This document shows positions 30,501 to 61,348 of a DNA stretch of 64,000 bases, piece by piece. Position numbers and translations under genes: made by a program. The notes below the pieces were generated by a model. That model searched no databases. It worked only from the letters and a program-made list of their open reading frames with translations, and had not been told where the DNA came from. The DNA lies in IMG/VR virus record IMGVR_UViG_3300033141_006329, positions 1 to 64,000 of that record, one strand, 5' to 3'. Position 1 is the stretch's first letter; each line of letters starts with the position of its first letter.

Positions 30501-31617
30501 CGAGTAGTTCGGAAAAATCCTTTTTTCTTTTCTCCATTATATGGGTAGGAACTTGATTATCCACTAATTCTGCTGGTCTGGATATTCTAACTATCTCATT
30601 TCTAGATGTGCTTTTAACTTTGGGTCTGGTTAGAATGGTTTCCGAATATTGTTTCACCATCTTATCTGCTACTTTTTTCTTCTCCTCCTTAGTTTTACCC
30701 TTCATTCTTTTTGCTACAGTTACTGCTTTATCGGGATCACCTGTTACATGATAAACTATTGCAGATGTTACAACTTCATCTGTATCCAATTCATCTATAT
30801 TGACATTTCTATATTCGGGTACTGAATCCATCATATTTTTTATTATTGACTTTACTGCTACTTGAGTTTTTTCGGACCCATATTTCAGTGTATCTGTATT
30901 ATTAACAACTAATTTGGATACTACATCAGTCTCGGCATTCTCAACATCTTTGGGATCTGAACTTTCTAACATAGATAACATCGATCTAATTCTGGCAACA
31001 TTTACTGGTTTATCTTTATCATACAACAAAACAAATCTACCCCCAGAATGATCATAAAAGAATAATAATAATTTATCAAATGGTATATCAGTCCCCTCCT
31101 TCAACATGTTATATATTGGATATATTTTTCTACGTCTTAAACTTTTCATTATAGGTGCATCGAGATTAACTGAATAAACCAATACCCTCTGAAATAGATC
31201 TTCAGGCACACTTCCTACTGCCTCTATAATCTTACTTATAATCATAGCACCTCTACCTGTATTAAACCTCGTCAGTTTAAATTTCTTGGTACTATAATTT
31301 ATCAAATTACTCAAATCCAAATAAAAATTCTTACCTATAACATTTTTATAATCGCCTATAAATCCTTTTACTGGGCGCAATTTATGTTCTATTAATAATT
31401 TCTTATATTGGGGAGTCAGAAGAGTTCGAGGTTTCTTTGTAATTGGAACAAACACATGTCTAACTTGTGTCACCTTTATTCTCATGGCTGTAAATGCTTC
31501 TAAGAATTTATGATTTTCTGTAAGCATAGTAAGACTTATATTTTTTCCATCTATTCCAGCAGGAGGAATAATTAGACTATCTACGGGTCTATATGGTTTG
31601 ATATTTTTAAATTGCAT
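27565..31617 (-). CDS. rpoB: multisubunit RNA polymerase beta subunit with about 350-aa N-terminal extension
   Basis: DPLETPDS, DDGCRVMMG, GYNFED, GDKMNNRHGNKG, DIILNPLGVVNRMN, GGQKFGE. Confidence 0.95.
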   Translation of the reverse strand: MQFKNIKPYRPVDSLIIPPAGIDGKNISLTMLTENHKFLEAFTAMRIKVTQVRHVFVPITKKPRTLLTPQYKKLLIEHKLRPVKGFIGDYKNVIGKNFYLDLSNLINYSTKKFKLTRFNTGRGAMIISKIIEAVGSVPEDLFQRVLVYSVNLDAPIMKSLRRRKIYPIYNMLKEGTDIPFDKLLLFFYDHSGGRFVLLYDKDKPVNVARIRSMLSMLESSDPKDVENAETDVVSKLVVNNTDTLKYGSEKTQVAVKSIIKNMMDSVPEYRNVNIDELDTDEVVTSAIVYHVTGDPDKAVTVAKRMKGKTKEEKKKVADKMVKQYSETILTRPKVKSTSRNEIVRISRPAELVDNQVPTHIMEKRKKDFSELLVKDLTNVFKPLETENLPLKVKSVKINPIKSPAGELKKTLKDRYTIQLSGPEGEVHTVELDIPHLTENGTFVINGQPKVLVNQLITHPIFFYKPYHGRLETSYAKLTIYSQQTKSPYLMAYMSGYKLPIMMFLGYNYGFKETMELFKIKYEIGIEKKPDSIKLLDDRFITFTTSSIVGEEVISSFKRSVVSFPVNHFEIEEKGFWERVLIKEIGTRNCIYRIDQSWKFILTPVAREVLLSKGDPTTLPTVIKYICEEVVKGTVDDRNSMDKQRVRTSEVFTNQIQKQVLSAYNEYLSKKLGGDETARLSLSPTKVFSEVTNSPNCQLLETSNPMEELSMMTRITPVGIGGIPDKAAVPHKALNIHYTYYGNIDPLETPDSPMVGIQQHLTVGATISNARGTFAMKDPSLVKPSEILSVGPAMVPFVESDDGCRVMMGTGQSRQVIPTEGAEPPAVQTGYESLLTNLLSENFIKKSPVNGVIISIKPDMIIVKDKDTGKEVPIDTRSVVLKSGSGKNGLSKFKPTVAIGQTVKRDQILAEGANISEGCIANGVNLLCAFMAWKGYNFEDGIVISESAAKKYISVHVEEEKVYLEPDDDVLSIVNVGDTIDKGGILITHSKAAYDVEAYKHLRTEGGIVSNIEVYANVKDIPEKLQSVYEEFRGHFTKINGKYPLGSFKEKNERFDGIMIKFTMEQHLKMEKGDKMNNRHGNKGVVSIIEKDENMPITPWGEKVDIILNPLGVVNRMNTGQTAEAHVGLIAKELASRIKDLPKARFISLLRTVLELLDGTDNKEYSKNVISKLKSMSDKGFNDLKNQVVKKGYMSIIVPPFKGPSRTNILEALAILGLKPSYKLKLPEFNMTTDPVTIGFILIQKLEQLSAKKLASRGVGPYVSKTLAPTAGKKRGGGQKFGESDLYGLLAWDCPIIIDEMFGSLSSDHASKNEMISEIIQQGKTEFRQGKINPEKELLDNMIIACHLESE

Positions 31618-34600: not shown

Positions 34601-36461
34601 CATTAATAGAATCCTTACTATGTACTGTTATCATTTTATCCTTAACTTCTTGTTGGGCTTCTTCGGACATTGGAGCGTAGAGAGCCATTGTATCATATAA
34701 AAATATACCCGTGTCTGTGGTAAATGTTTTATAATCCTCAACTGTAAAATCGTAACCAATTGTCTTATTCGGATCATGTTGTATATTCAGACAAGTTGCG
34801 GGTATAATTTCTATTTCCTTAGCATTTTGTTTGTGTAACAAATTTTTAAATGATTCTGATATATTGGATTCTTCTATAATGTGAGAAGGGATTGTGATCG
34901 ATTTTTGAGTATAATTTTTATTCCTGATACAATATCTAACATCATTCGTAACATCATCTGTATTAGTAAAATCTGGATGTTTTAATAACTTCTTGGGACA
35001 CCAAACAATCCTCCCTCTTTTTAAGGGAGGGGTAGATTTTACAATCTCAATATATTCTCTTAATTTTCTTTTTTTCTCAGGGTGGTTTAAAAGAGTTTGT
35101 AGACGTATGAGAAATTCAGAATATTCTTTTCGTATTGGAATGTATAAAACATAATAATGACGATATTCAGCTGGATCTATTATAGGTATTTTCTGTCCAT
35201 CTATCCCTAATGTATAGTTTTTAATATCTACTGAAATCGAACTCTCTATACCTAAACGATAATAAAGAACATATCGAACATCTTCAATGAGTTTTTTAGA
35301 TTTGGATGTAGCGGAAACTCCTCTGGGTCTAACCATACCATCTGTATCAATATATCCTGCAAATAATCCCATCACAAAATCGTCTGTGGAATTTAAAACC
35401 CAATCGGGAAGATGCTTATCAGAACAGGTATTTCCAAATTGATTTATATTAAATGGTACTTTTCTATTATATCCCCATCTTGTTGCCGGTTTATAACCAT
35501 TTCCATTTTTATCCTTTAAATTATAGGGATGATCATATTCTCGTAATTGATTTCTAAGTGGGGGTACTCCTATAAAATCTTCCAATAGCTCTTGAGCTAT
35601 ATTTGTCCACCCATTTCCAATGTCAGTATTTGAAGAATGTAATAATGAGATCCTTTGAGAAATATCACCATCACCTAATAATGCACCTATATAATAACCA
35701 AACTTTTCTTCGGTTATATTATTTTGGATTTCTTCATTTAATATAAATGATCTAGCATCTTTTGATGTCTTGGGTCTGCTCATAGATCTAATTAAATAAT
35801 ATCTTTTAGGGTCTTCAATAATTTCTTCGGGCGTGACTTTTCTGATTTCATCCTGATTATAATCAATAGCAACGACAGAATGATTATTAGATATCCATAA
35901 TTCCTTAACATCGCCTATAAGAGTATTTTTCTTCCTCCTATTGACAGAAAACATTTTGATATTTTCATGAATCGACCAATGGCTTATTTTTTTATATTCA
36001 ATTTTTCCATCATTGTTAATAGCTTGACAAAAAATTTCATCTAAAACGCTATAATTTTTAACAACTCTACCACCATTCTTACGTTTTTCATATTCTAATT
36101 CACATCTAAATTGTTTGCAAAAATCTGAAATATGAATTCGCATTGGAATATAATTTTCATTTTCACGTCTGTAAAGTCTTAAAAAACAATAACTTGAGTC
36201 ACCATCGAAATCAAATCCGTACTTTACCGATGCTGCGGGATGTACTTCCATTGTACTTCCTTCCACAATTTTAACATAAGCCCCTTGAGATCTAGCACTA
36301 TGAACATTAGGATCTCGTTTGTATATTACAACTTTCCCAGCATCCTCTATCTCTCGTTTAGCAACATCAAAAATTACATCATGTATAGCTTTGGGAACTT
36401 TATACCCCCGACTTATCATTTTTAAAATAAGTCTTATCTCTTCTGTTGTAGCTTGCTCCAC
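31617..36461 (-). CDS. rpoC: RNA polymerase beta' central/C-terminal part containing two inteins (about 722 aa spliced)
   Basis: KRDPNVH, DFDGD, GSRKG..D...T...GY bridge helix, IMK/SFH trigger loop. Confidence 0.93.
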   Translation of the reverse strand: MEQATTEEIRLILKMISRGYKVPKAIHDVIFDVAKREIEDAGKVVIYKRDPNVHSARSQGAYVKIVEGSTMEVHPAASVKYGFDFDGDSSYCFLRLYRRENENYIPMRIHISDFCKQFRCELEYEKRKNGGRVVKNYSVLDEIFCQAINNDGKIEYKKISHWSIHENIKMFSVNRRKKNTLIGDVKELWISNNHSVVAIDYNQDEIRKVTPEEIIEDPKRYYLIRSMSRPKTSKDARSFILNEEIQNNITEEKFGYYIGALLGDGDISQRISLLHSSNTDIGNGWTNIAQELLEDFIGVPPLRNQLREYDHPYNLKDKNGNGYKPATRWGYNRKVPFNINQFGNTCSDKHLPDWVLNSTDDFVMGLFAGYIDTDGMVRPRGVSATSKSKKLIEDVRYVLYYRLGIESSISVDIKNYTLGIDGQKIPIIDPAEYRHYYVLYIPIRKEYSEFLIRLQTLLNHPEKKRKLREYIEIVKSTPPLKRGRIVWCPKKLLKHPDFTNTDDVTNDVRYCIRNKNYTQKSITIPSHIIEESNISESFKNLLHKQNAKEIEIIPATCLNIQHDPNKTIGYDFTVEDYKTFTTDTGIFLYDTMALYAPMSEEAQQEVKDKMITVHSKDSINDPIFELTKDVIVGIFTLTAATQKDPKVKSISSIADAEKLHIAHKVEMTYKGKKIKTTAGRIIFNNVLPQWYPFVDADVSKKTITNILKEIIEKSDVDFANTTDRLMRLGFKYNTIYPKTLNLEQLKIPPHLIKMKDELSATKIVSEQSDILDKIEVALLKHFKDTNSDLYYIVASGGSKGMNQIRQMMVCKGLVQDPMGNVLPPITKSINEGYTPKEYFEAAAGSRKGTIDRSLNTGAGGYGYRKMIYVVGNVQADVNNGNCGTRQTLQLKLTEDLFKRMTGRFVHDEKGVLKPLTKDMIGRVINLRSPIFCKSKKICRTCYGKLLAQLKTENVGMVAVQQVASLSEKIMKSSKGLVYHNDRWITMDDLWDNIDVEPVIEGDLETKEFVSSIQGKDGMVKTSVMQKHPPKDKMIVIGTNTGHILVCQADHPLWIKKNPICKWHKNSEFRLVGKETYTSWHTKYLIAEDNEVVEKLAGDVVKGDAIWIDNEPFIINKDRIRPKTAGYVIGAYCARGSVGKKSPDTIDIRIENEDQIDRLIRESERLDFKLKEIEKRSTVESATYVVFTYNKDIVEGIVLGIGVGDVRLAPDFLSYNKDWLKSFLAGYLDTIGAMPEHGCTRFSTYIRSYNLTQQFKMISLKLGYHTTISALSNRFHCKDRDARGLVEFVVKICIPAQKEMIPCEKVTEDLEFKPMSFKKNDNPIKGFDPIMVAKEIYTWIDPVYDIKTETNEFMLGAVQNHNSFHLGGVLILNKLDIIKELMTKVDDYIEPKIRESFKQEDDDLFSNSEFVMLRINKSIYEHSPIVKEKEYLDMKVGHFTLTFGDLEIPVAIEKPIKIYTPEEVEEDDSYISYMYTKGDKILYAEPTQENFTELARELDKLVGGKYPWQDVSTIYNKFYKALAATGGWDSSHLEVIISNILRAKKDPQQPARLIEPFNPEMYSIKTLPSIISWPLGFSFENFGKAIQYGMISDRAPESPIEKVLMGIPLTEERQK
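32379..33548 (-). mobile_element. intein 2 (390 aa) in the trigger loop, degenerate LAGLIDADG motifs
   Basis: IMK|SSKG...ADHPLW...VYDIKT...QNHN|SFHLGG; VIGAYCARG and LAGYLDTIG. Confidence 0.9.
34692..36197 (-). mobile_element. intein 1 (502 aa) with LAGLIDADG endonuclease, atypical C-terminus
   Basis: DFDGD|SSYC...SNNH...IGALLGDG...FAGYIDTDG...YDFTV...GIFLYD|TMALY. Confidence 0.85.
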
Positions 36462-37045
36462 TATAATTTCCTCATAATTTTCTTTTTCTGAAGCTCCAAT
36501 TTTTGAATAGCCTTTAGTATCTTAAATTTACACAAATCAGGATTATCTGATTCATCACAATTCTTCAATTGATCTATTAATATTGCTTTATAATCATCTA
36601 AGGATTTAATTCTACATACTATCCTATCTTCACCTTTCAAATTTTTACACGGTCCATACAATTTTGTATTATAATAATCAAAAGCTTTTTTGACAATAAA
36701 AATACCAAGAATTGCAGCAGGTATACCTATAGCTAATTTTTTAGCTAAGGGGATATTACTCTTCAATTTATCAATACCTTTAGTTATATCATCACTAATG
36801 TTTCTCGCATTTTTAGATGCAGTAGAAATATCTTTAGATGTGCCTGATATTTTCTTAAATATATCTTTGAATCCCTCCGTATAATATAATAAGAATTTCT
36901 TATATTCGTATAATCTATCAGACATATTGGAATCAGATATCATTACTTGCTCCAAAATATCTTCCAATAGCTCATCGTTAGAAGAATTTATATCTTTAAT
37001 TATATCCTTTATTTTACTCGTGTAATATTCTTCGCTCAAATGCAT
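36461..37045 (-). CDS. membrane-anchored helical protein with Cys pairs
   Basis: one hydrophobic helix; C...C and C...PDLC; stop overlaps the GTG start of beta'. Confidence 0.6.
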   Translation of the reverse strand: MHLSEEYYTSKIKDIIKDINSSNDELLEDILEQVMISDSNMSDRLYEYKKFLLYYTEGFKDIFKKISGTSKDISTASKNARNISDDITKGIDKLKSNIPLAKKLAIGIPAAILGIFIVKKAFDYYNTKLYGPCKNLKGEDRIVCRIKSLDDYKAILIDQLKNCDESDNPDLCKFKILKAIQKLELQKKKIMRKL

Positions 37046-37057
37046 AGCGTTTCTCCT

Positions 37058-37990
37058 CTACATTAATAGATCTGGGTCTAATTCTTTCCCTAAAACTTCT
37101 TTAACAGCTATATGAAATTCTTCGGGTATATTTTTTGATTGGGGTGAATTAACCAAACCGTATATTATAATAGGTTCAAATATACTACATGCCACCTTGA
37201 ATGGTAATCCAACTGTTCCTAAATTTAATTCTGGATTAGGTGTAATTACTGCCCTCGCTGAGAAATCCACACGTTTGCCCAATAATAAATTTCTAACTAT
37301 TCCATGTTTTTTAGATACCGATACTCTAATTAATTCATACAATTCCTTAATCAAGTTTTGCATCTTATAACTCAATATATCGAATATCGGCCCAGACACA
37401 CCTTTCAACTGATTAGATTGTATAATTATTTTTCTATAGAGAGCATTCAATTCACCTATTTCTGGTTTCTCTCCAGGGCTTTCAGGGATTGATATCTCTC
37501 GATACCTGGGAGGAATAACTATAAGTTTAGACATAAAGAACAGATCTTTTTTTATATTGCTATATATCATCTTTATAAGTTTATTCCTATCGCCACCCTT
37601 TTCATCTTCTCTAAATTTTATTTTTTGAATATTATCAATAAAAGAAGAAAACCCATCCAACTCCCCTTCAGGATCTTCAACCAATAATCCATCATCACCT
37701 ATAGAATATATTTTCTCGCTTGATATTAATGGTTGTATCTTTCTTTCTATCCTTTTATTTAAAATATCAAATAGTGATGGATGTATGACATTACAATTCA
37801 ATTCTATCCAGGAATAACTCTTTGCTCTATCAGGGGAAGCATCTAATCCAAATGTATCCTCTGACATCAATCCTTGTGGATGATATGCATAATTTCTGCC
37901 CATAAATATCTGGGGTGTAGATATAGGACCAATGCTATTATTTTTCCTTATAAAATCATCAGGACTAAGGATCTTAATCATCCAACCCAC
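37058..37990 (-). CDS. rpoC: RNA polymerase beta' N-terminal part
   Basis: GLMSEDTFG, WIELN, VIPPRYR, LLLGKRVDFSARAVITP, GLP. Confidence 0.92.
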   Translation of the reverse strand: MGWMIKILSPDDFIRKNNSIGPISTPQIFMGRNYAYHPQGLMSEDTFGLDASPDRAKSYSWIELNCNVIHPSLFDILNKRIERKIQPLISSEKIYSIGDDGLLVEDPEGELDGFSSFIDNIQKIKFREDEKGGDRNKLIKMIYSNIKKDLFFMSKLIVIPPRYREISIPESPGEKPEIGELNALYRKIIIQSNQLKGVSGPIFDILSYKMQNLIKELYELIRVSVSKKHGIVRNLLLGKRVDFSARAVITPNPELNLGTVGLPFKVACSIFEPIIIYGLVNSPQSKNIPEEFHIAVKEVLGKELDPDLLM

Positions 37991-38401: not shown

Positions 38402-38411
38402 TAGTTTGTCC
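38402..38411 (-). promoter_or_regulatory. repeated motif GGACAAAYTA (candidate late promoter)
   Basis: one of six minus-strand copies found by eye. Confidence 0.55.
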
Positions 38412-39449
38412 TCATCCGTGAGTATTAATATCATCATCTTCTTCAATTAGGGACATAATTTGACATGTGTGTGTACAACCGCCTTTACATAATGACTCTT
38501 TATCTGCTTCTATAGCCTCTTCTATATTTGCTTTTTCTACCCCATCTGATCCATGCTTATCCAATAAATCTATAGCTTTAAACTCTGGTGTATATCTGCC
38601 CCTTATCCGCCCACAACACCGCATGGTCCCGTCACATTCAATCGTGACATTATGCAGATTATCTTTACCTAATTTGCAATCTAAATTAGCAGGTAGTATG
38701 TTATATATCTTCATCAGCAAAGTATCCTTCATATGTATTTTATAATCACTGTCTCTCAATCTTTCAAATATAGCCTTAACTTCAGAATTCTTTGGAACTA
38801 ATAATTCGGGGTTGGTTACAGATGAGAAATCATAATAATTATTCTTTGCAATATCCAATACTGTTATATCTGAATATATTTCATTGGCCGACAATTTTTC
38901 TACTGTTTCTTCTAAATATTTTATATTATCCTTATCCACAGTAATTTCTGCTACAGGGTCATCTACTAAACCATCATATATCAATCTAACCAACATATTA
39001 AATCCGGCATTAGATTTATACATCTCATCATCATCTATACTATCATGCAACCAAAAACCTGGATCTACAGATGCAGTGAATCCTTTTATTCTACCCACCT
39101 TATCAAACATATCTCCTATGAGTGGTCTTATTGTGTCACTACAATTTGATATTATTGTATAATTTGCATCTATGTTTTTAAGATGTTTTAAAACAGTTGG
39201 TAATTCTTTATACAGGAAAGGTTCTCCCCCAAATAATATAAAGAATATATCTTTATTATGCTTGACCATTCTATCTATCATGTCTATCCAAAACTCTGGA
39301 GATTGCTCATTCTGGAAATAATATTTACCATTTGGATATTCTTTTGGTTGAAGAATATAATCTATATCTCCGCTAAATCTACAATAATCACAATGCAGGT
39401 TACACCGTCTAGTTAATACCAATGTTGCTATTTTAATTTTGTTTTCCAT
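38412..39449 (-). CDS. radical SAM protein with C-terminal Cys-rich (SPASM/twitch-like) region
   Basis: CNLHCDYC, GGEP, CDG..RCC, CKGGCTHTC. Confidence 0.85.
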   Translation of the reverse strand: MENKIKIATLVLTRRCNLHCDYCRFSGDIDYILQPKEYPNGKYYFQNEQSPEFWIDMIDRMVKHNKDIFFILFGGEPFLYKELPTVLKHLKNIDANYTIISNCSDTIRPLIGDMFDKVGRIKGFTASVDPGFWLHDSIDDDEMYKSNAGFNMLVRLIYDGLVDDPVAEITVDKDNIKYLEETVEKLSANEIYSDITVLDIAKNNYYDFSSVTNPELLVPKNSEVKAIFERLRDSDYKIHMKDTLLMKIYNILPANLDCKLGKDNLHNVTIECDGTMRCCGRIRGRYTPEFKAIDLLDKHGSDGVEKANIEEAIEADKESLCKGGCTHTCQIMSLIEEDDDINTHG

Positions 39450-49697: not shown

Positions 49698-50751
49698 TAA
49701 TTATCTCTAATATTCTTGCATGTAACTCATCTATCGTATCATCCATTTCAACACTATCTCTTAATGCTTTTCCAACAGTAGAAATATGCAATGGTCTACT
49801 CCATCTGGATACTTCAGAATAATCCAGTACATTAGATAAATTCAATAATTGTTTAAGATAACTAAAACCTATCTCATAACATGCATTAATCTTCATCATA
49901 CAAAAATGGACTGATTCATTGGGCTCATTTACAACTATCATATCGCCCCATCCTCTTTTAACCAATTCTTTATAATCAGAAAGAGAGGATCTCAAATCAC
50001 CTTCTTTAAAATCATACGTAGACAACATAGTTAAAACAGACCACACCGAAGATTTTCCTGTTGACATCATATTCTTTACAAATCTAGGATCAGCTAATTC
50101 TTCACCAGTTGGAGCCAAAAGAATATCTGTAGGATCTTGCTTAAGAGATGATGTTGATAGTATTTTCCTTTTAATCAATCCCATCTTAGATAAAAAACTT
50201 CTTTTGACAAATTTTTTATTTCTAAGATCTTTCATCATGCTTATAATATCACCAACACCTTTTACAGTATATGGTACACATTTTACACCTATTCTTATAA
50301 CTCTCGTACCAGTACCACCTAGTATAGTGGCCTTTATACTAATAGGTATCTCCAATATTGTAGGTTCTAATCCTATAGTAGTAAAAAATTGAATTCCTTT
50401 GGGTATCTCGATTTTTTCTGGTTCAGTGAATGTTGATCTAGCAGTAGGGTCTTCATCTGGTTTAGTAACCATACCTGTTGCTATTTTATATAAATCTCCA
50501 GCAGCTTGTCTTTTCTCTTTTGTAGTAATTGGCACAGATGGTTTTGGACCAGCCTCCGATACAATATTCATAGATTCGGATCTAGCTGTTTTAAATAGTC
50601 CGCTATATTTTTTTAAAACCGCTGCTCTAAAAGTGGCACTGTTTATTAAAAGGATATTTCTTTCTACCATCTTAGCCAGAGCAGGAACCAATCGTGGGTT
50701 AACATTTGGGCTAACCATAGTAGGAACAACAAACAATGCTTCCATATTCAA
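49690..50751 (-). CDS. hypothetical, probable virion protein
   Basis: 353-aa ORF in the late cluster. Confidence 0.55.
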   Translation of the reverse strand: MNMEALFVVPTMVSPNVNPRLVPALAKMVERNILLINSATFRAAVLKKYSGLFKTARSESMNIVSEAGPKPSVPITTKEKRQAAGDLYKIATGMVTKPDEDPTARSTFTEPEKIEIPKGIQFFTTIGLEPTILEIPISIKATILGGTGTRVIRIGVKCVPYTVKGVGDIISMMKDLRNKKFVKRSFLSKMGLIKRKILSTSSLKQDPTDILLAPTGEELADPRFVKNMMSTGKSSVWSVLTMLSTYDFKEGDLRSSLSDYKELVKRGWGDMIVVNEPNESVHFCMMKINACYEIGFSYLKQLLNLSNVLDYSEVSRWSRPLHISTVGKALRDSVEMDDTIDELHARILEIING

Positions 50752-50941
50752 ACTCCTTATCTAGAGCCAGGGTATATCTGACCCTGGTTCTTTAATATCT
50801 ATTTTCTTATTAGTTTTATTTTTAACCTCAGATCTTTTAACCGTTGGTAGTTTCCTAACTTTTTTAGATGAATTTTGTTTACTTATCATATCATCAATAA
50901 GTTGTAAGTTTACTACTTTAGGTTTCTTTTCAAACACAATT

Positions 50942-51460
50942 CTATTGTAATGCCATGTCTATTAGGGAGTCTCTTAATGATTTGGAAGCATCTATTAATA
51001 CTTTACCTTTCCAGTCGTCTAATTGCTTTTTGTTCTCTTTGCTCAATACAGATTCAAACATCATAGAATCCAATGCTACAGCATTTCGTCTCTTCATTAC
51101 AACATATCTAGCAACCAAATCCTCTTCTAAATCCTCAACATTGCCCATCTCTTTTATTTCTTCTTTGACCATCTTTAATACAGAAGCTTTTTCTAAAAGA
51201 TCTTTAGCTCTTGCTTTAGCTTTTTTTGCAGATTCATTTGCAGATACGGCCATCTCAGCAACATTTTTAAATTTTATATCTGAAGAAAAATTAACCTTCT
51301 TATAAATTTCAAATAGATTGCTAAGGAATGCACCTTTTGCTGTAAGGAATTTATTTAAATCTTCTTGTTCCTCAATAGCTTCTCTGGCAGGTTTTCCGAA
51401 TAATACAGCATCAATACCAAACCAGTGTTTTAATACCTCTGTTTTTACATTCTTGTCCAT
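50942..51460 (-). CDS. helical hypothetical, probable virion protein
   Basis: preceded by the GGACAAACTA motif and AAGGAG. Confidence 0.55.
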   Translation of the reverse strand: MDKNVKTEVLKHWFGIDAVLFGKPAREAIEEQEDLNKFLTAKGAFLSNLFEIYKKVNFSSDIKFKNVAEMAVSANESAKKAKARAKDLLEKASVLKMVKEEIKEMGNVEDLEEDLVARYVVMKRRNAVALDSMMFESVLSKENKKQLDDWKGKVLIDASKSLRDSLIDMALQ

Positions 51461-51537
51461 CTAATAACTCCTTTTTCTATAGTTAAACATATGTGGATTT
51501 TCGAGTAAATATCCACTAAAACATTCGTCTATCTTTG

Positions 51538-51547
51538 TAGTTTGTCC
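51538..51547 (-). promoter_or_regulatory. GGACAAAYTA motif
   Basis: about 80 nt upstream of the 51460 start. Confidence 0.55.
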
Positions 51548-51549
51548 TG

Positions 51550-52842
51550 TTAGATTTCAGTGGGATCATCCATATCAAAATCTGCATTGTACTTATCTAA
51601 ATATTCTGTCTTTAATACATCTTGAACTTCCTCTAAAAAGGCTTTTTTTAATTCTGGGGATTTTCTACAGATTCTTGGAAGTGTAACTTGTTGGAATTTT
51701 GGGCCTGGACAAGATGTCAATTTATACCATCCTTTACTATGATGAACTATTCTTTTTGCATCCTTCAATAATTCATAGTTTGTATACGTATTATTAAATC
51801 CTCGTTCAAAATTAAAAACTAGATTTATGGGGATATTGGGTGAAAATAATTTATTCTTAATTGCCTTGCATAATACTTTAGATCCATGAAATCCGTACTC
51901 ACCACCTATGTCACCAATTGCCCTAAGATATAATAATTGTATACTATTAAATAATATAGATCTACCTCCAGGAATATCATCATTTGGTAGATATCGAAGG
52001 GTGGCTGGTTTTTTATTGAATATAGAAATATCTATTTTAGATCTCAATTGGTTTATAGCCAATAAAGTTATATTGTATTTCACCAATTTTGGAACATATC
52101 GGGGCAACATATATGATAATATTCTAGCCTTTAATCCCATAAGTTTATTAAGATCCTCTTCATTTTCTGCTTTCTTAGGGTTTGTATTTGCTATACTATC
52201 CCATACTATAACAGATGGTATGTCTACAATTTTCTGATCTTCTTTAAATTTACACATTCCTTCTATCATCTGAAATACAGATTCTACAAAGATTCGCGGT
52301 GTTGGTCTTAAATCTTCTACGCCTAATTGTCTCAAGCGTCTTTCAGTAGTTATATCTTCAGAATCCATATATGCACAAGTAAATTTTTTCCCCCATCTTT
52401 TCTGACCAGATGCTAAAATATTACCGGCCAATGCACTCTTACCAGATCCTGGCATGCCTACAACCATTACTAAACCAGAACCTATACCACCGCCTAATAT
52501 AGTATCTAATAAATCAATACCTGTTGGTATAATTGATCTGGGTTTTGTTTCTACTTCTATATCATAACTATCTTTAAGATGTGTTTCAAATAATTTAGAT
52601 AAATCTTCAACAGATTCACTTTCCTCGGCTGTTAATTCTTTAGACTTATCTAATGTTTCTTCTTCAAGTACTACTTTCTTCTCTATCTCCTTCTTTGTTT
52701 GTTTAATCGCAGGAGTTAGTTTCTCCTTTGTTGTCTGTTTTGTTTCCTGTTTTGCTCTCGCTACCATCTTTTTTTGCCCCTTCTTTTTTTGATTTTTCTC
52801 TGAGTACCATCTCCATAGCCTTAGCATATGCGCGTATGGCAT
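51550..52842 (-). CDS. recA: RecA/UvsX-family recombinase (likely start MVARAK at 52767)
   Basis: PTGIDLLDTILGGG, GMPGSGKS, VWDSIA, INQLR, PGG. Confidence 0.9.
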   Translation of the reverse strand: MPYAHMLRLWRWYSEKNQKKKGQKKMVARAKQETKQTTKEKLTPAIKQTKKEIEKKVVLEEETLDKSKELTAEESESVEDLSKLFETHLKDSYDIEVETKPRSIIPTGIDLLDTILGGGIGSGLVMVVGMPGSGKSALAGNILASGQKRWGKKFTCAYMDSEDITTERRLRQLGVEDLRPTPRIFVESVFQMIEGMCKFKEDQKIVDIPSVIVWDSIANTNPKKAENEEDLNKLMGLKARILSYMLPRYVPKLVKYNITLLAINQLRSKIDISIFNKKPATLRYLPNDDIPGGRSILFNSIQLLYLRAIGDIGGEYGFHGSKVLCKAIKNKLFSPNIPINLVFNFERGFNNTYTNYELLKDAKRIVHHSKGWYKLTSCPGPKFQQVTLPRICRKSPELKKAFLEEVQDVLKTEYLDKYNADFDMDDPTEI

Positions 52843-53137
52843 CTGGTTGGTCAGAACTTTCTTCTTCTGTAGTTTTTCTTCTCATATCTGTTTCCAATTT
52901 TATAGATGAGTCTATCTGTCCTCTAACAGCAAGCTCACTCTTTATAATCTCTGTAACAGTTTTCATACGTTCTGCTATAAGAAACTTTTTTCTATAGTCA
53001 GTTGTTTTTGGCAATATAGCATCTAGATTACCCCGAAAATCTGTTATATCACCTAACATATCATGTAAACTACTTCTATTTTCTTTAAGCTCTTTTAATA
53101 GTTTCTGTATCTCATCAGCAGTGCTAATATCACTCAT
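52703..53137 (-). CDS. coiled-coil protein
   Basis: heptad-rich 144 aa, downstream of the actin-like gene. Confidence 0.6.
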   Translation of the reverse strand: MSDISTADEIQKLLKELKENRSSLHDMLGDITDFRGNLDAILPKTTDYRKKFLIAERMKTVTEIIKSELAVRGQIDSSIKLETDMRRKTTEEESSDQPDAIRAYAKAMEMVLREKSKKEGAKKDGSESKTGNKTDNKGETNSCD

Positions 53138-53139
53138 TC

Positions 53140-53238
53140 TTAACCCTGTAGTATCTTTAAGTTTGGATTACTGGTCAATATATCTGGCACATTTTCGAGT
53201 ACCTCTATCGGCTGTGATGACTTATTTTGGTCCTTCAT
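53140..53238 (-). CDS. possible 32-aa peptide
   Basis: GAAGGA RBS; MKDQNKSSQPIEVLENVPDILTSNPNLKILQG bridges the actin stop to the next ATG. Confidence 0.35.
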   Translation of the reverse strand: MKDQNKSSQPIEVLENVPDILTSNPNLKILQG

Positions 53239-54319
53239 TTTTTGATCCTTCTTTTTTTTCTTCTGGTTTTTGTCCATCTTTTTTCTCCTTTTTTGATTGT
53301 TGTGATGTTGCATATAATAAACAACCTTCTGCAACTGCTGTTAACGGATCCTCTGCTTGTCTTATTTCAGATATAGCATATGGAAAATTTTTAGTATTAT
53401 CAAATATGGATTTAAACATATCTAAAAATCCTTTAGGCTTACTAGTGCCACCACTGACTATTATAGGAATCTTTTCATCTATACTTAGACCTTCGGCATT
53501 CTGATTAAACTTTGCTATTATAACTTTCAATACATATTCTATGAGTGATTTATAATAAAAACTCACAGCCCCTCGAATTCTTCTTTCCCTTTTATCTGCA
53601 CACATAGGATTCATAAGATCGAAATCAGGTTTTTCTTTTATAGCCGTAACTCTATTTGGTATTATATTCAGAGATAAAGCTGCATTAGCATCAATCCAAT
53701 CCCCGGCTCTACTTACTGCAAATGTTAGTGTTGGTATACCTTTATATGAACATGCTATATTAGTTAGTCCTGCACCAAAACTACAGGCTATGCCACTATA
53801 TTTTTCTTTCTTACATTGAGAATAAATAATAGCCATTGCTTCATTCAATGGTTTAGATTTATAACCTAAAGTTGAAAAAATTGAATTGAATACTCGCTCA
53901 TGATATAATACTGGGGGTATCTCTAAATCGATGGCTGCTTCGGGTATCGAATATACACAATAACCATCATCCACTTTTCCGCCTATTAATCTTTCCATCA
54001 TCAATGTCAATACATCTAGGGCATCTATTTCTTCTGGTGATATGACCCCCTGCGCCATAGGTCTTTTAACCTTATAATTAAACATATTGGCAAACCTATA
54101 GGCATCTTCCCCTATTATATATAATGATTTAGAATCATTCATTCCGTCATCATATTCCACATAATCTATTCCTGTATCAGTTAAATCAGATAGATTAGAA
54201 AAATCATCTGTTACTGGTACAAACATATTTCTCATCGAAGAAATTTTAGCCTTTCCTCCCTGTATTTGCTTGGCGCACACGCAGAACATGGTCCCTATAT
54301 CACATCCTATGATTTGCAT
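53222..54319 (-). CDS. actin-fold ATPase, volactin/MreB-like
   Basis: DIGTMF (phosphate 1), NEAMAIIYS (connect 1), SFGAGLT (phosphate 2), SGGTS (adenosine), DPLTAVAEG (connect 2). Confidence 0.88.
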   Translation of the reverse strand: MQIIGCDIGTMFCVCAKQIQGGKAKISSMRNMFVPVTDDFSNLSDLTDTGIDYVEYDDGMNDSKSLYIIGEDAYRFANMFNYKVKRPMAQGVISPEEIDALDVLTLMMERLIGGKVDDGYCVYSIPEAAIDLEIPPVLYHERVFNSIFSTLGYKSKPLNEAMAIIYSQCKKEKYSGIACSFGAGLTNIACSYKGIPTLTFAVSRAGDWIDANAALSLNIIPNRVTAIKEKPDFDLMNPMCADKRERRIRGAVSFYYKSLIEYVLKVIIAKFNQNAEGLSIDEKIPIIVSGGTSKPKGFLDMFKSIFDNTKNFPYAISEIRQAEDPLTAVAEGCLLYATSQQSKKEKKDGQKPEEKKEGSKNEGPK

Positions 54320-54660
54320 TACCTATCCTCCTTATCAAAATCAAGAAAATCTACTAGATCGGATTCTAAATCCAATTCTTTAACCGTCGATTTATCTTCT
54401 TTCATATTTGTTTTAAACTCAGAAACATTTATTTCTGGAATAAATATATCACTGTTATCTGTAATTTTTAGTTTGTCCGTCTGAGTGTGTGGGTTTTCAG
54501 ATATTACATTATTTAAGGATATATTAGAAACTGCATCCAATACTCTATCTATTTTTAATTCTAATGTATCTATTCTATCCTCTAATCTAGCTAAATTATT
54601 ATCATACTCTTTAACTTTTTTCTGGAATTTCTCATTTGCTTCTTGTGCCTTCATGCTCAT
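54319..54660 (-). CDS. coiled-coil protein translationally coupled to the actin-like gene
   Basis: LARLEDRIDTLELKIDRVL; stop/start overlap at 54319. Confidence 0.65.
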   Translation of the reverse strand: MSMKAQEANEKFQKKVKEYDNNLARLEDRIDTLELKIDRVLDAVSNISLNNVISENPHTQTDKLKITDNSDIFIPEINVSEFKTNMKEDKSTVKELDLESDLVDFLDFDKEDR

Positions 54661-55247
54661 AGCATATACTCCTCTTGAAGTGTGGTACCTGAATACATAA
54701 ATGGTTCTATTAAGTTACACCAATTGTACGGAGAATGAGGCACTATTTCAAAATTTAATTTATAGATACAACTATTCTTAAATTTAGACGTTACAACATT
54801 ACCACAATTCCCACAAAAATTAAGATCCGTATTCCTTTTTAGTAGTATATGAAATTCATTAAGACTTAGAAACTGATCTGACCACATTTCAATATTATCT
54901 GCTCTGTAATAAATATTCTCATCAAATCTACCATTCATATAAACCCAAGAATAATCATCAACAAATAAGTTTCTAATAGCGCATCCTCTTAGTCCATGTT
55001 GTATTATATTCGGAGCGTGTACTACATTTTTAATAGGATTTTTTAAATTATCTATATGCAATTCAAATATATTATTAATGTTTATAAAATTATTATAAAT
55101 ATGTCGTTTATCAGATCCTGGTAAAGGAGATGATACAATCAACCATGTTCCGAATGGATCTTTCTTATAACTCTCTAGAAAATGTTTATAACAAATTGTA
55201 GTTTTACCTGACTGTCTCGGTGCAATATTTAATGTTCTCATCCGCAT
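54657..55247 (-). CDS. short P-loop protein
   Basis: APRQSGKT and LFVDD, terminase/helicase-like fragment. Confidence 0.45.
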   Translation of the reverse strand: MRMRTLNIAPRQSGKTTICYKHFLESYKKDPFGTWLIVSSPLPGSDKRHIYNNFININNIFELHIDNLKNPIKNVVHAPNIIQHGLRGCAIRNLFVDDYSWVYMNGRFDENIYYRADNIEMWSDQFLSLNEFHILLKRNTDLNFCGNCGNVVTSKFKNSCIYKLNFEIVPHSPYNWCNLIEPFMYSGTTLQEEYML

Positions 55248-57943
55248 GCTCCCGAATTTGCACCACAGTTATTACAATTAAAACAAGATCCTACTCTCTG
55301 CATAAGTTCTCCACATACGTCACATATTGGGGTAGAGTCATCAGAAGATGCTTTGTTTGTCTCTATCTTACTTTCTTGTTTCTCTTCCTTTATCTCTTTT
55401 ATTAATCCTAATGATAATTTATCATTTTCTGATAAAAATTTATTACCCAGATATCTTGCTAAATAGTCCACTATAGAAGTTGCAAATCTTATATCTTCAT
55501 TTCTCGTTATACCAGCTGGTTCAAATCTAGAATACATTAGTTTGGATACTATATCTCTAAGTGGTACTCCATATTGTAAACACGTACTAACCATTATAGC
55601 AAGTGAATCTAATAATCCTGATAGTGTACTGCCTTGTTTAGAAACAGTAAGAAATATTTCTCCTATTTTTCCTGTAGGGTATTTGCCTATTGTTAAATAA
55701 CCCTCAACTGCTCCTATAGAAAATTTATGAATAAATGCATCTCTTTCTTCGGGTAGCTTTGATCTGAACGGTTCACATTCTTCACATTTCTTACATTCGT
55801 TTCTAATATTCTGTTTAACATCTTTTTCATTTCTTAATGGTTGATATACCTTTGAACCATCTCTGTAGACAGTTACTCCTTTTAAACCTCTTCGCCACGC
55901 TTCTAGATATAATTTATATATATCATCTACAGTTACATAAGAAGGAAGATTAATTGTTTTTGATATTGCGCCGGATAAAAATGGTTGTACTGATTCCAAC
56001 ATTTTTATATGACCCATATAATCTATACACCGCTTACCATTGTTTGGAATACTTGCAGTATCAAATATAGAAATATGATTTTTATTCAAAACATTACTAT
56101 TTTCTAAATGTCCTTCAGAACATAGTTCTTCTATAATTCTTCCTGTATCATATTCCGAATATTGTAAATTCTCCAAAGCTTCTCTTACTGAATTGTTTAC
56201 AGTTTTTATTATTGCTCCTTTATTACCCGATAATGTCTTATATTTAATAAGAGAATAATCTGGCTCTACTCCGAATGTATCACAATCCATCATAAAAGAC
56301 GTTGTTCCTGTAGGGGCTAATAGTGTTGCCTGAGAATTTCTAAACCCTCTATTATCATCTATCTTACTTTTAATATCATCCCAAATCTTAATAACATCTT
56401 TACTTAACTGATTTATAATATTTTTTTTGTCAGATATTATAGTAGATGTATTATCTATTAATTTTTTTTGATTATCATAATGCTGATTCAATACTTTATA
56501 AAAAGGTTTTTTATTTTCTTCAAATTTTTCAAATGACCCCTGCTTATCTGCTAATATATTACTCGTATCATATGCAATTCCCGTTAATAAAGCTGTTATC
56601 AAACCTGCAATATTTCTACCATCATCACTATCATAAGATAATCCTAACCACATTAACAATGCTCCGAGATTAGAATATCCCAATCCTAATGGTCTAAACA
56701 TATGTGAATTCTTAGTTATTTTTCTTGATGGGTATGAAGAGTTATCTACTATTATATCCTGAGCAGTTATAATTGTCCGAACTATATCCTTAAATCTTTT
56801 TGTATCGAATATTATATCTCCTTTATTATTTTTATAAAAACACTTTCGTAGATTTATAGATGCGAGATTACATGAAAGGTTTCCTGGCGCTGCTAGAAAT
56901 TCGCTACAAGGATTACTTGTCTTTATTTCTCCGCTATTAGCACATGTATTCCATCTATTTATATTTCCCGAAAATTGAACTCCAGGATCGGCAGTTTTCC
57001 AAGCAATCTCAGATATTTCTTTTAGTAAATTTCTTGCCTTAAATTTCTCACATCTTTCACCTGTAAGAACATATTTAGTCCACCATTCACCATCCTTCTC
57101 AACTTGTTCCATAAACTCATCAGATAATCTAACCGATATATTTGTATTTTGAAAAAAGACCTCATCCGACATCTCGTACCCATCACTATTAACAAATCCT
57201 GATTCTTTCAACATATGTAATTTGAGTTCTTCATTTTCCTTACAATGTATAAATTTTTGAATATCAGGATAAATATCGTCAATGCAAACCAACTTGGCAG
57301 ATCTTCTTAACGTTCCACCGGATCGAATTATTCCAGCCGATGTGTCAGCTGCTTTTAAAAAGGATACAGCTCCACTCGCAAATCCCCCGCCTCTAACTCT
57401 CTCTTTAGAACTCCTCAATGAAGATAAGTTTGAACCACTTCCACTTCCTCCTTTAAATATAGCTGCCTCAAGCTTAATATTATCATAAATACTTTCCATA
57501 TTATCTTCCACATCTAAGAGGAAACAAGCTGAACATTGGGGTTTATCTACAATACCAACATTGAAATATATAGGTGAATTAAATGTAAAATACTGATTTA
57601 TTTGATAGTATTTAAGCTTATATTTAAAATCTTCATACTCATCATCAACAAAATATCCATCCTTTTTACCCCAGTCAGATATTGTGTTTGCTACCCTATC
57701 AATCATTTGTCTTATTGAATTTTCTTTTACCTTAGCATTATTGCATAAATATTTACTACTGACTATCTTAACAGCAGCATCACTAAATGTATCTGGAAAT
57801 TCGACCTCTTCATCAAAAATTATATTACCATCCTTATCTTCTATCTTAGCTTGTCTTTTAACAAATTTTATTTCCTTGTATGGATCTTTTTTATCGTTTG
57901 TAGAACGCATTGTATCCTTTTGTTTTTCTTCGGGCTTTCCCAT
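55238..57943 (-). CDS. nrdJ: class II (B12-dependent) ribonucleotide reductase with TSCPD/Zn-ribbon tail
   Basis: NSPIYFN, SACF, RRSAK, NPCSE, APTGT, KGVTVYRDG, CDVC...CNNC. Confidence 0.92.
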   Translation of the reverse strand: MGKPEEKQKDTMRSTNDKKDPYKEIKFVKRQAKIEDKDGNIIFDEEVEFPDTFSDAAVKIVSSKYLCNNAKVKENSIRQMIDRVANTISDWGKKDGYFVDDEYEDFKYKLKYYQINQYFTFNSPIYFNVGIVDKPQCSACFLLDVEDNMESIYDNIKLEAAIFKGGSGSGSNLSSLRSSKERVRGGGFASGAVSFLKAADTSAGIIRSGGTLRRSAKLVCIDDIYPDIQKFIHCKENEELKLHMLKESGFVNSDGYEMSDEVFFQNTNISVRLSDEFMEQVEKDGEWWTKYVLTGERCEKFKARNLLKEISEIAWKTADPGVQFSGNINRWNTCANSGEIKTSNPCSEFLAAPGNLSCNLASINLRKCFYKNNKGDIIFDTKRFKDIVRTIITAQDIIVDNSSYPSRKITKNSHMFRPLGLGYSNLGALLMWLGLSYDSDDGRNIAGLITALLTGIAYDTSNILADKQGSFEKFEENKKPFYKVLNQHYDNQKKLIDNTSTIISDKKNIINQLSKDVIKIWDDIKSKIDDNRGFRNSQATLLAPTGTTSFMMDCDTFGVEPDYSLIKYKTLSGNKGAIIKTVNNSVREALENLQYSEYDTGRIIEELCSEGHLENSNVLNKNHISIFDTASIPNNGKRCIDYMGHIKMLESVQPFLSGAISKTINLPSYVTVDDIYKLYLEAWRRGLKGVTVYRDGSKVYQPLRNEKDVKQNIRNECKKCEECEPFRSKLPEERDAFIHKFSIGAVEGYLTIGKYPTGKIGEIFLTVSKQGSTLSGLLDSLAIMVSTCLQYGVPLRDIVSKLMYSRFEPAGITRNEDIRFATSIVDYLARYLGNKFLSENDKLSLGLIKEIKEEKQESKIETNKASSDDSTPICDVCGELMQRVGSCFNCNNCGANSGACG

Positions 57944-57964
57944 TAACTACTCTCCTTTTCTAAC

Positions 57965-58375
57965 TTAATCTTGATCTTTTGATTTTACCAATAACCAACT
58001 GTTTTCTTTGCTATTAGTCCCTTTAAATTTTATTAATGCATAATTTCCATGCATTGGTGATCCTGTAACTTTAAATTTTATAACTTTATTATGATGCCAA
58101 CCTAAAATCTCTGCACTTCCTTTCTGCTCTATTTTAACATTCCCTGCACCATACGATCCTCCAGGTATATCTCCTTGGAATCTAAGCCATGATTTATCAT
58201 GGTCTTGTGTTTTTATAGCCAAAACTTTGTCCCCAATCTTCTTAGGTAAATTTGCTTTGGGTATTGCCCAGGAAGCTAATTTATTTCCATATGGGAGTTG
58301 TAGTCTTAGGTCATAATGTTTACCTGCTCTTTTAGCCTGATGTAATTGTAATATAAATGGTACTGATTTAGACAT
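57965..58375 (-). CDS. stand-alone LigD 3'-phosphoesterase (PE) domain
   Basis: QLHQAKRAGKHYDLRL, SWAIPK, LAIKTQDH, IPGGSYGAG. Confidence 0.88.
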   Translation of the reverse strand: MSKSVPFILQLHQAKRAGKHYDLRLQLPYGNKLASWAIPKANLPKKIGDKVLAIKTQDHDKSWLRFQGDIPGGSYGAGNVKIEQKGSAEILGWHHNKVIKFKVTGSPMHGNYALIKFKGTNSKENSWLLVKSKDQD

Positions 58376-58943
58376 GTGTGTCAGACTCCTCTCCTAAATG
58401 TCTATCTAACATTTTCTCGATTGACTCTGTTTCTATTTTTAAAATATCTTCTAATTTCCAAACGAACAAAGTATTATCTAAAACATTCACTTTCATATCA
58501 TAATTCAATCCAAAATAATCATGAAATAAACCATATACATAAGCTGTTGATATAAAAAGTGCAGGCTTATAATTTTCCTTTGCTATTAGGACTGGTTCTT
58601 TATATACGCTATCTGCTTGTACTACTGCCTCATTCCAAAAACTTAATATACCAGTCTTCTTCCCTGTAATTAATCCCCACAAATTTATATTCTTATAAAA
58701 TTTTATTTCTATAGAAAAGAATCTCCTAAATTTATCTGAGATACCTCGACACGTAGAAGAAATATCTCCATCTTGTCCTTCTGTTCTGATATTCTTTTTT
58801 ACTCGTGTAGTATGCCTAGAACCTGATCCATGAGTCCTCCAAAATAGATCATCTCTTTCACCTTTAGACAGCCAGATAGATAATTGCTTTGCTATATTTC
58901 TTTCGTACTCAGCTCCTTTGCTATGACCATTGATCTTACTCAT
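58368..58943 (-). CDS. Holliday-junction resolvase-like PD-(D/E)XK nuclease
   Basis: KGAEYERNIA, RTHGSG, GDI, SIEIK. Confidence 0.75.
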   Translation of the reverse strand: MSKINGHSKGAEYERNIAKQLSIWLSKGERDDLFWRTHGSGSRHTTRVKKNIRTEGQDGDISSTCRGISDKFRRFFSIEIKFYKNINLWGLITGKKTGILSFWNEAVVQADSVYKEPVLIAKENYKPALFISTAYVYGLFHDYFGLNYDMKVNVLDNTLFVWKLEDILKIETESIEKMLDRHLGEESDTHV

Positions 58944-58961: not shown

Positions 58962-58978
58962 TTTTTAATTTGTCCAGT
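58962..58978 (-). promoter_or_regulatory. ACTGGACAAATTAAAAA motif
   Basis: 17-nt exact match to 61309-61325. Confidence 0.6.
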
Positions 58979-58992
58979 TTATATACTGGATT

Positions 58993-59370
58993 TTAACGAT
59001 GAAATCTATCGAATTCGCTCTTTAATTCCTCATATTTATTATTCAAGTGATCATATTGCATTCTCAAATCTTTATTCTCTCTATCCAGATAATTACATCT
59101 TTCTTCAAAATCACACTTGCTATCAACAACTTGTATATCAAGTCTCTTGGCATAATGCTTACTATTATGTATACCAAAATAATCTGTTAATCTCCAAAAC
59201 AGATCGACCAACGAATCAGACATTGCCTCAAAATCATCATCATCACTATAACAATCTTCTTTATCCTGAAATACTTCCCCTCCCCATTCAGTTGTCTCTT
59301 CTTCTTGTGTTGAAGTATTCCTTAATATAAACCCATTGTCAACTCTTTCTATTTCACAAGCCCACTTCAT
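58993..59370 (-). CDS. hypothetical protein with C-terminal coiled coil
   Basis: 125-aa ORF. Confidence 0.55.
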   Translation of the reverse strand: MKWACEIERVDNGFILRNTSTQEEETTEWGGEVFQDKEDCYSDDDDFEAMSDSLVDLFWRLTDYFGIHNSKHYAKRLDIQVVDSKCDFEERCNYLDRENKDLRMQYDHLNNKYEELKSEFDRFHR

Positions 59371-61308: not shown

Positions 61309-61325
61309 TTTTTAATTTGTCCAGT
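61309..61325 (-). promoter_or_regulatory. ACTGGACAAATTAAAAA motif
   Basis: just downstream of a terminator, upstream of the nuclease gene. Confidence 0.6.
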
Positions 61326-61348
61326 AGCACGTGTGGATTTTTGATTTT

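Follow-up and report, generated by a model that had tools for sequence, protein, structure and literature searches.

We analysed bases 1-64000 (hereafter the window, meaning this whole stretch of 64000 nucleotides) of the 223,370-bp IMG/VR contig IMGVR_UViG_3300033141_006329. The source is a jumbo tailed phage, and a 365-amino-acid (aa) open reading frame (ORF) on the minus strand encodes a true volactin-family actin of this phage. The 113-aa gene directly upstream encodes a coiled-coil protein, called the adaptor here, that accompanies the actin in related phages. The locus probably encodes a so far unstudied system of large phages for positioning with actin. We put the probability at roughly 0.6 that it is best explained, as a whole, by a volactin filament and a bivalent adaptor that couples phage cargo to it. 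A preliminary description of the window, made from its letters alone, had suggested that the system was undescribed. This holds for the system but not for the presence of the family in viruses, because automated annotation already labels viral volactins in databases. The volactin family and phage-encoded actins with adaptors are thus known already; the new element, as judged from sequence comparison, is a conserved volactin-associated adaptor module common to phages and bacteria.

Phage cytoskeletons are known mainly from tubulins (PhuZ, TubZ) and from a few ParM- or Alp-type actins. Volactin, present on hundreds of contigs from uncultured phages that are often jumbo or huge, is a third, widespread and unstudied case, and it raises the question of whether large phages organize replication with actin instead of tubulin. 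The main features, with the evidence for each, are as follows.

53222-54319, minus strand: predicted volactin-family actin-fold ATPase, 365 aa (Pfam, AlphaFold2 [AF2], Foldseek, tree, motifs)
54319-54660, minus strand: volactin-associated adaptor, 113 aa, with a coiled coil at the N-terminus (about residues 1-50), followed by a linker and a conserved C-terminal module (synteny, hhalign)
54322-54444, minus strand: C-terminal module of the adaptor, the proposed volactin-binding part, with F73-I74-P75-E76, an acidic stretch and a terminal amphipathic helix (conservation, hhalign)

The volactin-family actin and its relatives

The 365-aa protein matched the Pfam family Volactin (PF25216) at full length (profile positions 3-321 of 321) with an E value of 1.2e-61 and 209.4 bits, the curated gathering threshold being 35 bits. 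Volactin was the sole Pfam family found at E values up to 0.1, and PHROGs had no family for the protein. The five actin-fold motifs noted in the preliminary description (phosphate 1, connect 1, phosphate 2, adenosine and connect 2) were all present and were conserved in 75 relatives: D7-x-G9-T10; N159-E160 (LNEAMAIIYS); S180-F-G-A-G-x-T-N187; S289-G-G-T-S293; and D324-P...V329-A-x-G332. We aligned the protein with haloarchaeal (Halorubrum, Halobellus), Archaeoglobaceae, planctomycete and Magnetococcales homologues and with Escherichia coli MreB. The phage and haloarchaeal members had a common signature (DxGT, RRPM..G..S, LYH, NE.MA.IYS, SFGAG.TN, R.GDWID, GGTS, DP...VA.G).

An AF2 model built on 75 homologues contained all four actin subdomains (predicted local distance difference test [pLDDT] score 90.8, predicted template modelling score 0.89); a Lys/Glu-rich disordered tail starts at about residue 340. 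The top Foldseek matches of the model were MreB, MamK, BeeR and eukaryotic actin [template modelling (TM) score 0.58-0.65; 14-18% identity]. EutJ and FtsA ranked lower, and Hsp70 was absent among the 50 matches listed. MreB and MamK are the nearest solved structures (TM 0.58-0.65), and both are linked to a membrane or organelle via partner proteins. The window protein, however, is only 16-18% identical to them, has no match to the Pfam family MreB_Mbl and has other partners. The PDB contains no volactin structure, and the family profile matched only FtsA there, weakly (E 0.0037); a fold search of BFVD gave no close viral structure.

A quick maximum-likelihood tree of 148 rows was calculated with E. 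coli MreB as the sole outgroup; ParM, Hsp70 and sugar kinases were left out. The root fell on the very long outgroup branch, and only unrooted groupings were used. The window protein was placed inside the volactin family. An archaeal clade (99*) was separated from a sister group (97*) of two clades. The first of these, which contains the window protein, comprised viral clade A together with Magnetococcales, Desulfosarcina and Neomarinimicrobiota (99*; 38 rows). The second was viral clade B (99*; 53 rows; about 40% identity), mostly from high-GC contigs. The assignment to the volactin type rather than to MreB, proposed in the preliminary description, was thus borne out by the Pfam match, the motif signature and the tree. 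Grouping with Hsp70- or sugar-kinase-type enzymes, which that description had named as evidence against its proposal, was not seen in the fold search, which placed the protein with cytomotive actins.

Compared with VolA (HVO_2015 of Haloferax volcanii; PF25216), the phage protein is alike in its full-length match to the same Pfam family, in the motif signature and in an identity of about 34-35% to haloarchaeal members. It differs from VolA in belonging to a separate clade, sister to bacterial and not to archaeal volactins, and in having an insertion of about 6 residues in subdomain IB as well as the Lys/Glu-rich tail. It is paired with a soluble coiled-coil adaptor, whereas the conserved protein encoded upstream in haloarchaeal loci has four transmembrane helices. 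A function in cell shape, as for VolA, would not be expected for a phage.

In a set of 5.8 billion proteins, we found 1691 homologues at E <=0.001. The best 120 of these 1691 were 47-99% identical to the window protein and all had PF25216; many were encoded by contigs 160-335 kb long. In IMG/VR, relatives were encoded on at least 383 contigs, often of 200-530 kb. Among GenBank phages, a match was obtained in 2 of 50,697 records, both uncultured huge phages (LR745208 and LR756511), and plasmid matches were limited to five haloarchaeal megaplasmids. GTDB genomes contained at least 556 matching stretches, with identities of 43-45% in Magnetococcales and 33-36% in Halobacteria; further taxa were Desulfosarcina, Omnitrophota, Planctomycetota, Nitrospirota, Archaeoglobaceae and Thermoplasmatota. 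Most bacterial phyla were without volactin in this search. The ESM Atlas clusters nearest to the actin were all Volactin, with members that were 70-100% viral and named 'Volactin domain-containing protein'. We found no paper treating phage volactins in the literature searched.

The distribution bears on the possibility that the phage volactin manipulates the host, co-polymerizing with or displacing a host cytoskeleton of the volactin or MreB type and thereby altering cell shape, blocking division or enlarging the cell to suit a large virion. Such a role would fit the function of Haloferax volactin in cell-shape transitions (PMC10869688), and the position of the phage clade as sister to bacterial volactins, in the starred 38-row clade, is compatible with capture from a host. 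However, the membrane anchor of bacterial adaptors has been lost from those of phages (see below). Since volactin is absent from most bacterial phyla, most potential hosts would offer no volactin as a target. We regard host-shape manipulation as possible but less likely than a positioning function, and overall as improbable.

Several volactin genes in other genomes had unusual arrangements. Some viral volactins (e.g. P0114; 562-710 aa) are split by an intein with a LAGLIDADG endonuclease, which suggests that the gene matters to the phage. In an Acidobacteriota cluster of the ESM Atlas, volactin is fused to an HU-type DNA-binding domain. In a Nitrospirota metagenome-assembled genome (MAG) and in an unclassified bacterial MAG (L027, 1-2301; L084, 3661-6777), volactin lies between apparent GvpF/L-like gas-vesicle proteins with an apparent winged-helix-like protein upstream, all labelled by reading of the sequences and not by a family-library scan. 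In clade B (about 50 viral loci; L112, 1-8984), it occurs with a ZapB-like coiled-coil protein, a Dps/ferritin-like DNA-binding protein and homing endonucleases; a conserved protein of ~400-430 aa just downstream of volactin and a zinc-ribbon protein are also found there.

The upstream adaptor and its proposed function

The preliminary description had noted that a 113-aa coiled-coil gene overlaps the start of the actin gene. We found that the overlap consists of one base, common to the stop codon of the first gene and the ATG of the second (TAATG). Weak coiled-coil matches were all that Pfam returned for the adaptor, and PHROGs gave one weak hemolysin match (E 0.0012). Searches of the ESM Atlas with this and with the 144-aa protein described below yielded sub-threshold leads only.

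In the subclade of the window, an adaptor gene of 113-135 aa was present directly 5' of the actin gene in every locus checked (L001, L002/3, L004/5, L087, L093, L170, L172 and L174; actin identity from 72% down to 46%). These adaptors have an N-terminal coiled coil and, near the C-terminus, the motif F/Y-I-P-D/E/N/S, acidic residues and a short terminal helix. A simple scan for the upstream motif detected the adaptor in 23 of 85 phage and metagenome loci. Among 17 phage adaptors, the only invariant columns were I74 and P75. In the sister phage clade, the C-terminal module is preceded by a conserved globular N-terminal domain of ~55 aa and a coiled coil, and in clade B a related adaptor protein may be encoded further upstream, as in L162.

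The module was also found upstream of bacterial volactin genes, namely in Magnetococcales, Desulfosarcina, Neomarinimicrobiota and KSB1. The N-terminus of the adaptor has two transmembrane helices in Magnetococcales and a cysteine-rich, zinc-finger-like segment in Desulfosarcina and a Neomarinimicrobiota MAG. When the 17 phage adaptors were compared with 10 bacterial ones by hhalign, the alignment (91.9% probability; E 6.9e-7) covered 54 columns that correspond to the C-terminal module, residues 61-112. This profile match indicates that the C-terminal module of phage and bacterial adaptors is homologous. We read the adaptor as modular, with a constant tail, predicted to bind the filament, and an exchangeable anchor or cargo domain.

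An upstream gene is also present in haloarchaea. In about 30 loci (e.g. L175, 1917-2825; L176, 1791-2690), volactin is preceded on the same strand by a gene for a conserved protein of ~300 aa with four transmembrane helices. The cytoplasmic tail of the protein is acidic and includes V-D-D-A-V-x-G-L-R-x-L-Q-G-G. This protein is a candidate for the membrane anchor of the tip-anchored Haloferax filaments. Its similarity to the adaptor was not significant; hhalign aligned the expected segment but with a probability of only 0.4-1.3%.

From these observations we propose the following mechanism. Volactin and adaptor would be expressed from a translationally coupled block of the replication type, which consists of the genes for ribonucleotide reductase, a P-loop protein, the adaptor, volactin, a small protein, a helical-hairpin protein and UvsX/RecA. 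Volactin would bind ATP and polymerize into dynamic filaments, like its haloarchaeal relative in vivo; HVO_2015 filaments span the cytoplasm and contact the membrane at their tips, and their binding factors are unknown (PMC10869688). The adaptor would be bivalent. Its C-terminal F-I-P-x motif and terminal helix would dock on the filament, and its N-terminal coiled coil would dimerize and hold the cargo. Since the module hangs on transmembrane helices or zinc fingers in bacteria, it would be the constant filament-binding part, and the N-terminus the exchangeable part for cargo or anchorage. In this phage lineage, the cargo would most likely be phage DNA undergoing replication or recombination, or the protein machinery involved. 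We infer polymerization, the binding of adaptor to filament and the identity of the cargo; for the last, the indications are indirect, namely the constant presence of UvsX/RecA and replication genes nearby in this subclade, the analogy with AlpA/AlpC and the HU fusions.

The working mode may resemble that of AlpA/AlpC of prophage CGP3 or of ParR/ParM, and the system may do with actin what the PhuZ spindle does with tubulin. The closest functional model is AlpC/AlpA of CGP3 in Corynebacterium glutamicum, a phage actin with a co-transcribed small adaptor, which is expressed early and which the virus requires to replicate its DNA efficiently (PMC4446434). The systems differ in several respects. 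AlpC belongs to another actin family, and the matches of the window protein in the phage collection are the two huge uncultured phages only. AlpA is a sequence-specific DNA binder, whereas no DNA-binding domain was detectable in the partners encoded in the window. CGP3 is a temperate prophage, unlike the jumbo phage studied here. PhuZ/TubZ of the Chimalliviridae is likewise a cytoskeletal polymer of jumbo phages, and the window also has genes for a multisubunit RNA polymerase of the phiKZ type, but the polymer here has the actin and not the tubulin fold. No PhuZ tubulin or chimallin was found among the scanned ORFs of the window, which covers 64 of 223 kb, in Pfam and PHROGs searches that detect close relatives only.

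ParMRC, AlfAB and Alp7AR likewise combine an actin-fold cytomotive filament with a small adaptor; ParR binds its filament through a short peptide at the C-terminus. The window differs from these systems in that the adaptor gene comes first and in its phage replication setting, and neither adjacent centromere repeats nor an adaptor of the ribbon-helix-helix or helix-turn-helix type, as in ParMRC, was found. This comparison bears on whether the locus is a type II (ParMRC-like) partition system that maintains the phage genome as a low-copy plasmid in pseudolysogeny or a carrier state. An actin-fold ATPase with small adjoining adaptor genes, the zinc ribbon in the small protein of relatives (see below) and the volactin paralogues on haloarchaeal megaplasmids would all be consistent with partition. 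However, no repeat array or centromere-like site was present near the operon, and Pfam and PHROGs detected no ribbon-helix-helix or helix-turn-helix domain. The replication setting is of the lytic type, with ribonucleotide reductase, topoisomerase II, helicase and multisubunit RNA polymerase, and there was no integrase or plasmid replication gene among the ORFs scanned, which were not all of those in the window. We therefore consider partition unlikely.

The downstream genes and the weighing of the positioning function

Three genes follow the actin gene, and relatives have insertions before them.

53140-53277, minus strand: small protein gene, 45 aa (a 32-aa version from 53238 is possible) (ORF; hidden Markov model E 3.4e-08)
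52703-53137, minus strand: 144-aa helical-hairpin protein with a basic disordered tail (alignment, AF2)
51550-52767, minus strand (ORF open to 52842): UvsX/RecA-like recombinase, last gene of the block (Pfam RecA E 3.3e-17; phrog_97, UvsX-like, E 1.5e-45)
L093, 4998-5894; L087, 5096-5833; L001, 7044-7405: insertions in relatives, with the block unbroken

The 32-aa peptide of the preliminary description is real but probably longer. Its ORF is open from 53140 to 53334 in another frame and overlaps the 3' end of the actin gene; translation probably begins at the ATG at 53277, downstream of AAGGAG, for a product of 45 aa. At the same position, relatives (L001, L002, L004, L087, L093, L169, L170 and L172) have homologues of 49-75 aa. 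The N-terminus of these homologues is variable and their C-terminal end conserved (K-hydrophobic-hydrophobic-x-[G/E]); those of L002, L004, L169 and L170 have a zinc ribbon (CxxC...CxxC), which occurs in relatives only. We rejected a fusion of the actin and small ORFs by read-through or frameshift at the A-run near 53258, as relatives encode a separate gene, which is non-overlapping in L004.

The preliminary description also placed a 144-aa coiled-coil gene and then recA at this site. Order and coordinates were correct, but AF2 modelled the 144-aa protein as an antiparallel hairpin of two helices (3-41 and 48-121; pLDDT 74). The protein had no sequence match in Pfam, PHROGs or PDB, and Foldseek returned only generic helical hairpins (E 0.06 or worse). 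Identity with UvsY was rejected, there being no similarity in sequence or fold (Pfam, PDB, Foldseek). Its family comprises 291 representatives at 50% clustering. The start of the recombinase gene is probably the internal ATG near 52767 (MVARAK...) and not 52842. Around these junctions (52703-53334), the C-terminus of the actin, the N-terminus of the small protein, the C-terminus of the 144-aa protein and the N-terminus of RecA are all Lys/Glu-rich low-complexity tails, and the direct repeats D1-D3 in this stretch are the coding imprint of these tails.

The genes flanking the actin gene were conserved with it in related phages. The five-gene block was kept down to 46% actin identity despite insertions of homing-endonuclease and ClpP-like genes. 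The small and 144-aa genes, however, were conserved in the subclade of the window only, where they lie between volactin and UvsX/RecA, and neither was detected among phages of the sister clade or around bacterial volactin genes. Thus, of the operon of coiled-coil partners described previously, the upstream gene stood as a general partner of volactin, whereas the two downstream genes are confined to one subclade and are equally tied to UvsX/RecA.

A narrower reading is that the actin has a single partner, the product of the upstream gene. The small and 144-aa proteins would then be UvsX/RecA accessories (a UvsY-like mediator or a loader), adjacent to volactin by the gene order of the lineage. 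The sister clade and the bacterial loci, which keep the adaptor but neither of the two genes, are in line with it. Similarity in sequence or fold to UvsY or any other recombination mediator was lacking, however. In L169, the 144-aa homologue follows volactin with no RecA after it within the contig, and in L174 it directly abuts volactin. In addition, four of four sampled distant members of the 144-aa family lay just 3' of a volactin gene. We take this reading to be a realistic possibility, though on balance an unlikely one. The small and 144-aa proteins may serve the filament, serve the recombinase or link both.

Several findings weigh against a filament that positions phage DNA. The small, hairpin and UvsX/RecA genes overlap and are contiguous in all loci with the 144-aa gene except L169, and insertions of foreign genes (for products of 85 and 35 aa, a ClpP-like protein and a GIY-YIG-like endonuclease, the last two labelled by reading of the sequences and not by family scans) occurred only between the actin and the small gene. 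Because of this contiguity and of insertions on the actin side, the small and 144-aa genes may belong to the recombinase and not to the filament. In L088, of the sister phage clade, the adaptor-volactin pair lies among NUDIX and glycosyltransferase genes without RecA; the idea of DNA as cargo therefore rests on the gene order of one subclade. None of the 113-, 45- and 144-aa proteins of the window had a recognizable DNA-binding domain (Pfam, PHROGs, PDB), and positions 50500-58500 contained no centromere-like repeat array, only low-complexity coding repeats. Filament formation in the volactin family is known from HVO_2015 only. Finally, the phosphate-2 motif starts with Ser and not with the usual Asp throughout the family.

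This last substitution, together with the lower-ranking EutJ and FtsA in the fold list and with FtsA as the sole PDB sequence match of the family profile, would suit an actin-fold ATPase that does not polymerize, such as a chaperone-like or EutJ/FtsA-like protein. However, the Ser is common to the haloarchaeal homologues and is therefore a family trait and not a sign of decay, and the founding member HVO_2015, from the same family, forms dynamic filaments (PMC10869688). The best fold matches of the window protein are filament formers, and it has no Hsp70-type substrate-binding domain. A non-polymerizing ATPase is thus possible but less likely than a filament, and indeed very improbable.

The sister clade, in keeping adaptor and volactin without RecA nearby, also argues that the adaptor-volactin pair is the core of the system. 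On the proposed coupling of a volactin filament to cargo through the adaptor, the short peptide module would be a handle on how volactin filaments couple to cargo in phages and bacteria. This handle may extend to archaea, where volactin binding partners are still unknown. A broader proposition is that many large phages run a volactin-based positioning machine and that the adaptor has a universal volactin-binding module, which bacteria use for tethering to membrane or DNA. We put this forward tentatively, at somewhat below even odds; if true, the phage operon would also point to the 'unknown volactin-binding factors' of cellular volactins.

Candidate promoter, gene packing and phage setting

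Further features of the window are the following.

54469-54497, minus strand: bipartite motif AAAACCCA-N11-GGACAAACTA, candidate internal promoter (enrichment, strand bias)
38402-38411, 51538-51547, 58966-58994, 61313-61341 and others, coding strand: copies of GGACAAAyTA
54657-55247, minus strand: 196-aa P-loop-like protein with PRQSGKTT near its N-terminus (ORF)
55238-57943, minus strand: class II ribonucleotide reductase (Pfam)

The motif GGACAAACTA, reported previously 150 nucleotides (nt) upstream of the actin start, was present at 54469-54478, at the stated distance from the actin ATG but within the adaptor gene. With <=1 mismatch, it occurred in 11 copies in the window (3.6 expected), all on the minus strand, and GGACAAA occurred 13 times on the minus and 0 times on the plus strand. 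Four of the 11 copies were intergenic, 23-78 nt before gene starts, and three copies, including that at 54469-54497, had AAAAyCCA about 11 nt upstream. The strand bias and the intergenic copies make it plausible that GGACAAAyTA is a phage promoter element. The copy within the adaptor gene could in that case drive a separate transcript for the actin. This copy may alternatively reflect coding constraint; in the window and in L093, GGACAAACTA falls on a D-K-L-K stretch of the adaptor, and among the relatives its position was conserved in L093 only.

The order of transcription is ribonucleotide reductase, 196-aa protein, 113-aa adaptor, actin, small ORF, 144-aa protein and RecA/UvsX-like recombinase. 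Adjacent genes of the block overlap by 1 to 10 nt or more, and the packing is therefore like that of one translationally coupled operon. The 196-aa gene overlaps the start of the 113-aa gene by 4 nt, which indicates translational coupling. Its product had no match in Pfam or PHROGs and its position was not kept in L001 or L004, so that its membership in the volactin module is uncertain.

All genes of the window are on the minus strand, the GC content is ~32% and the GC skew is negative throughout. No tRNA genes were found in the window, and GenBank phages contained no DNA nearly identical to it. The window encodes topoisomerase II, a helicase, SbcD, an RNA ligase, a T4 gp5-like baseplate hub and pieces of a phiKZ-type multisubunit RNA polymerase. 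The last are ORFs of 1350, 1614 and 310 aa (27565-37990, minus strand) that match beta/beta' pieces in PHROGs, which makes it likely that the phage uses a polymerase of its own for transcription. Possible genes for DNA-base modification (5556-7812, 20710-21333 and 38412-39449) encode a QueD/PTPS-like protein, three radical-SAM proteins, one of them QueE-like, and a MazZ-like dATP/dGTP diphosphohydrolase; the relative L002 has an adenylosuccinate-synthetase-family gene, possibly of the PurZ type (1498-2682). A sulfotransferase-family gene, unusual in a phage, is present in the window (25667-26599) and in the distant relative L004 (1166-1912).

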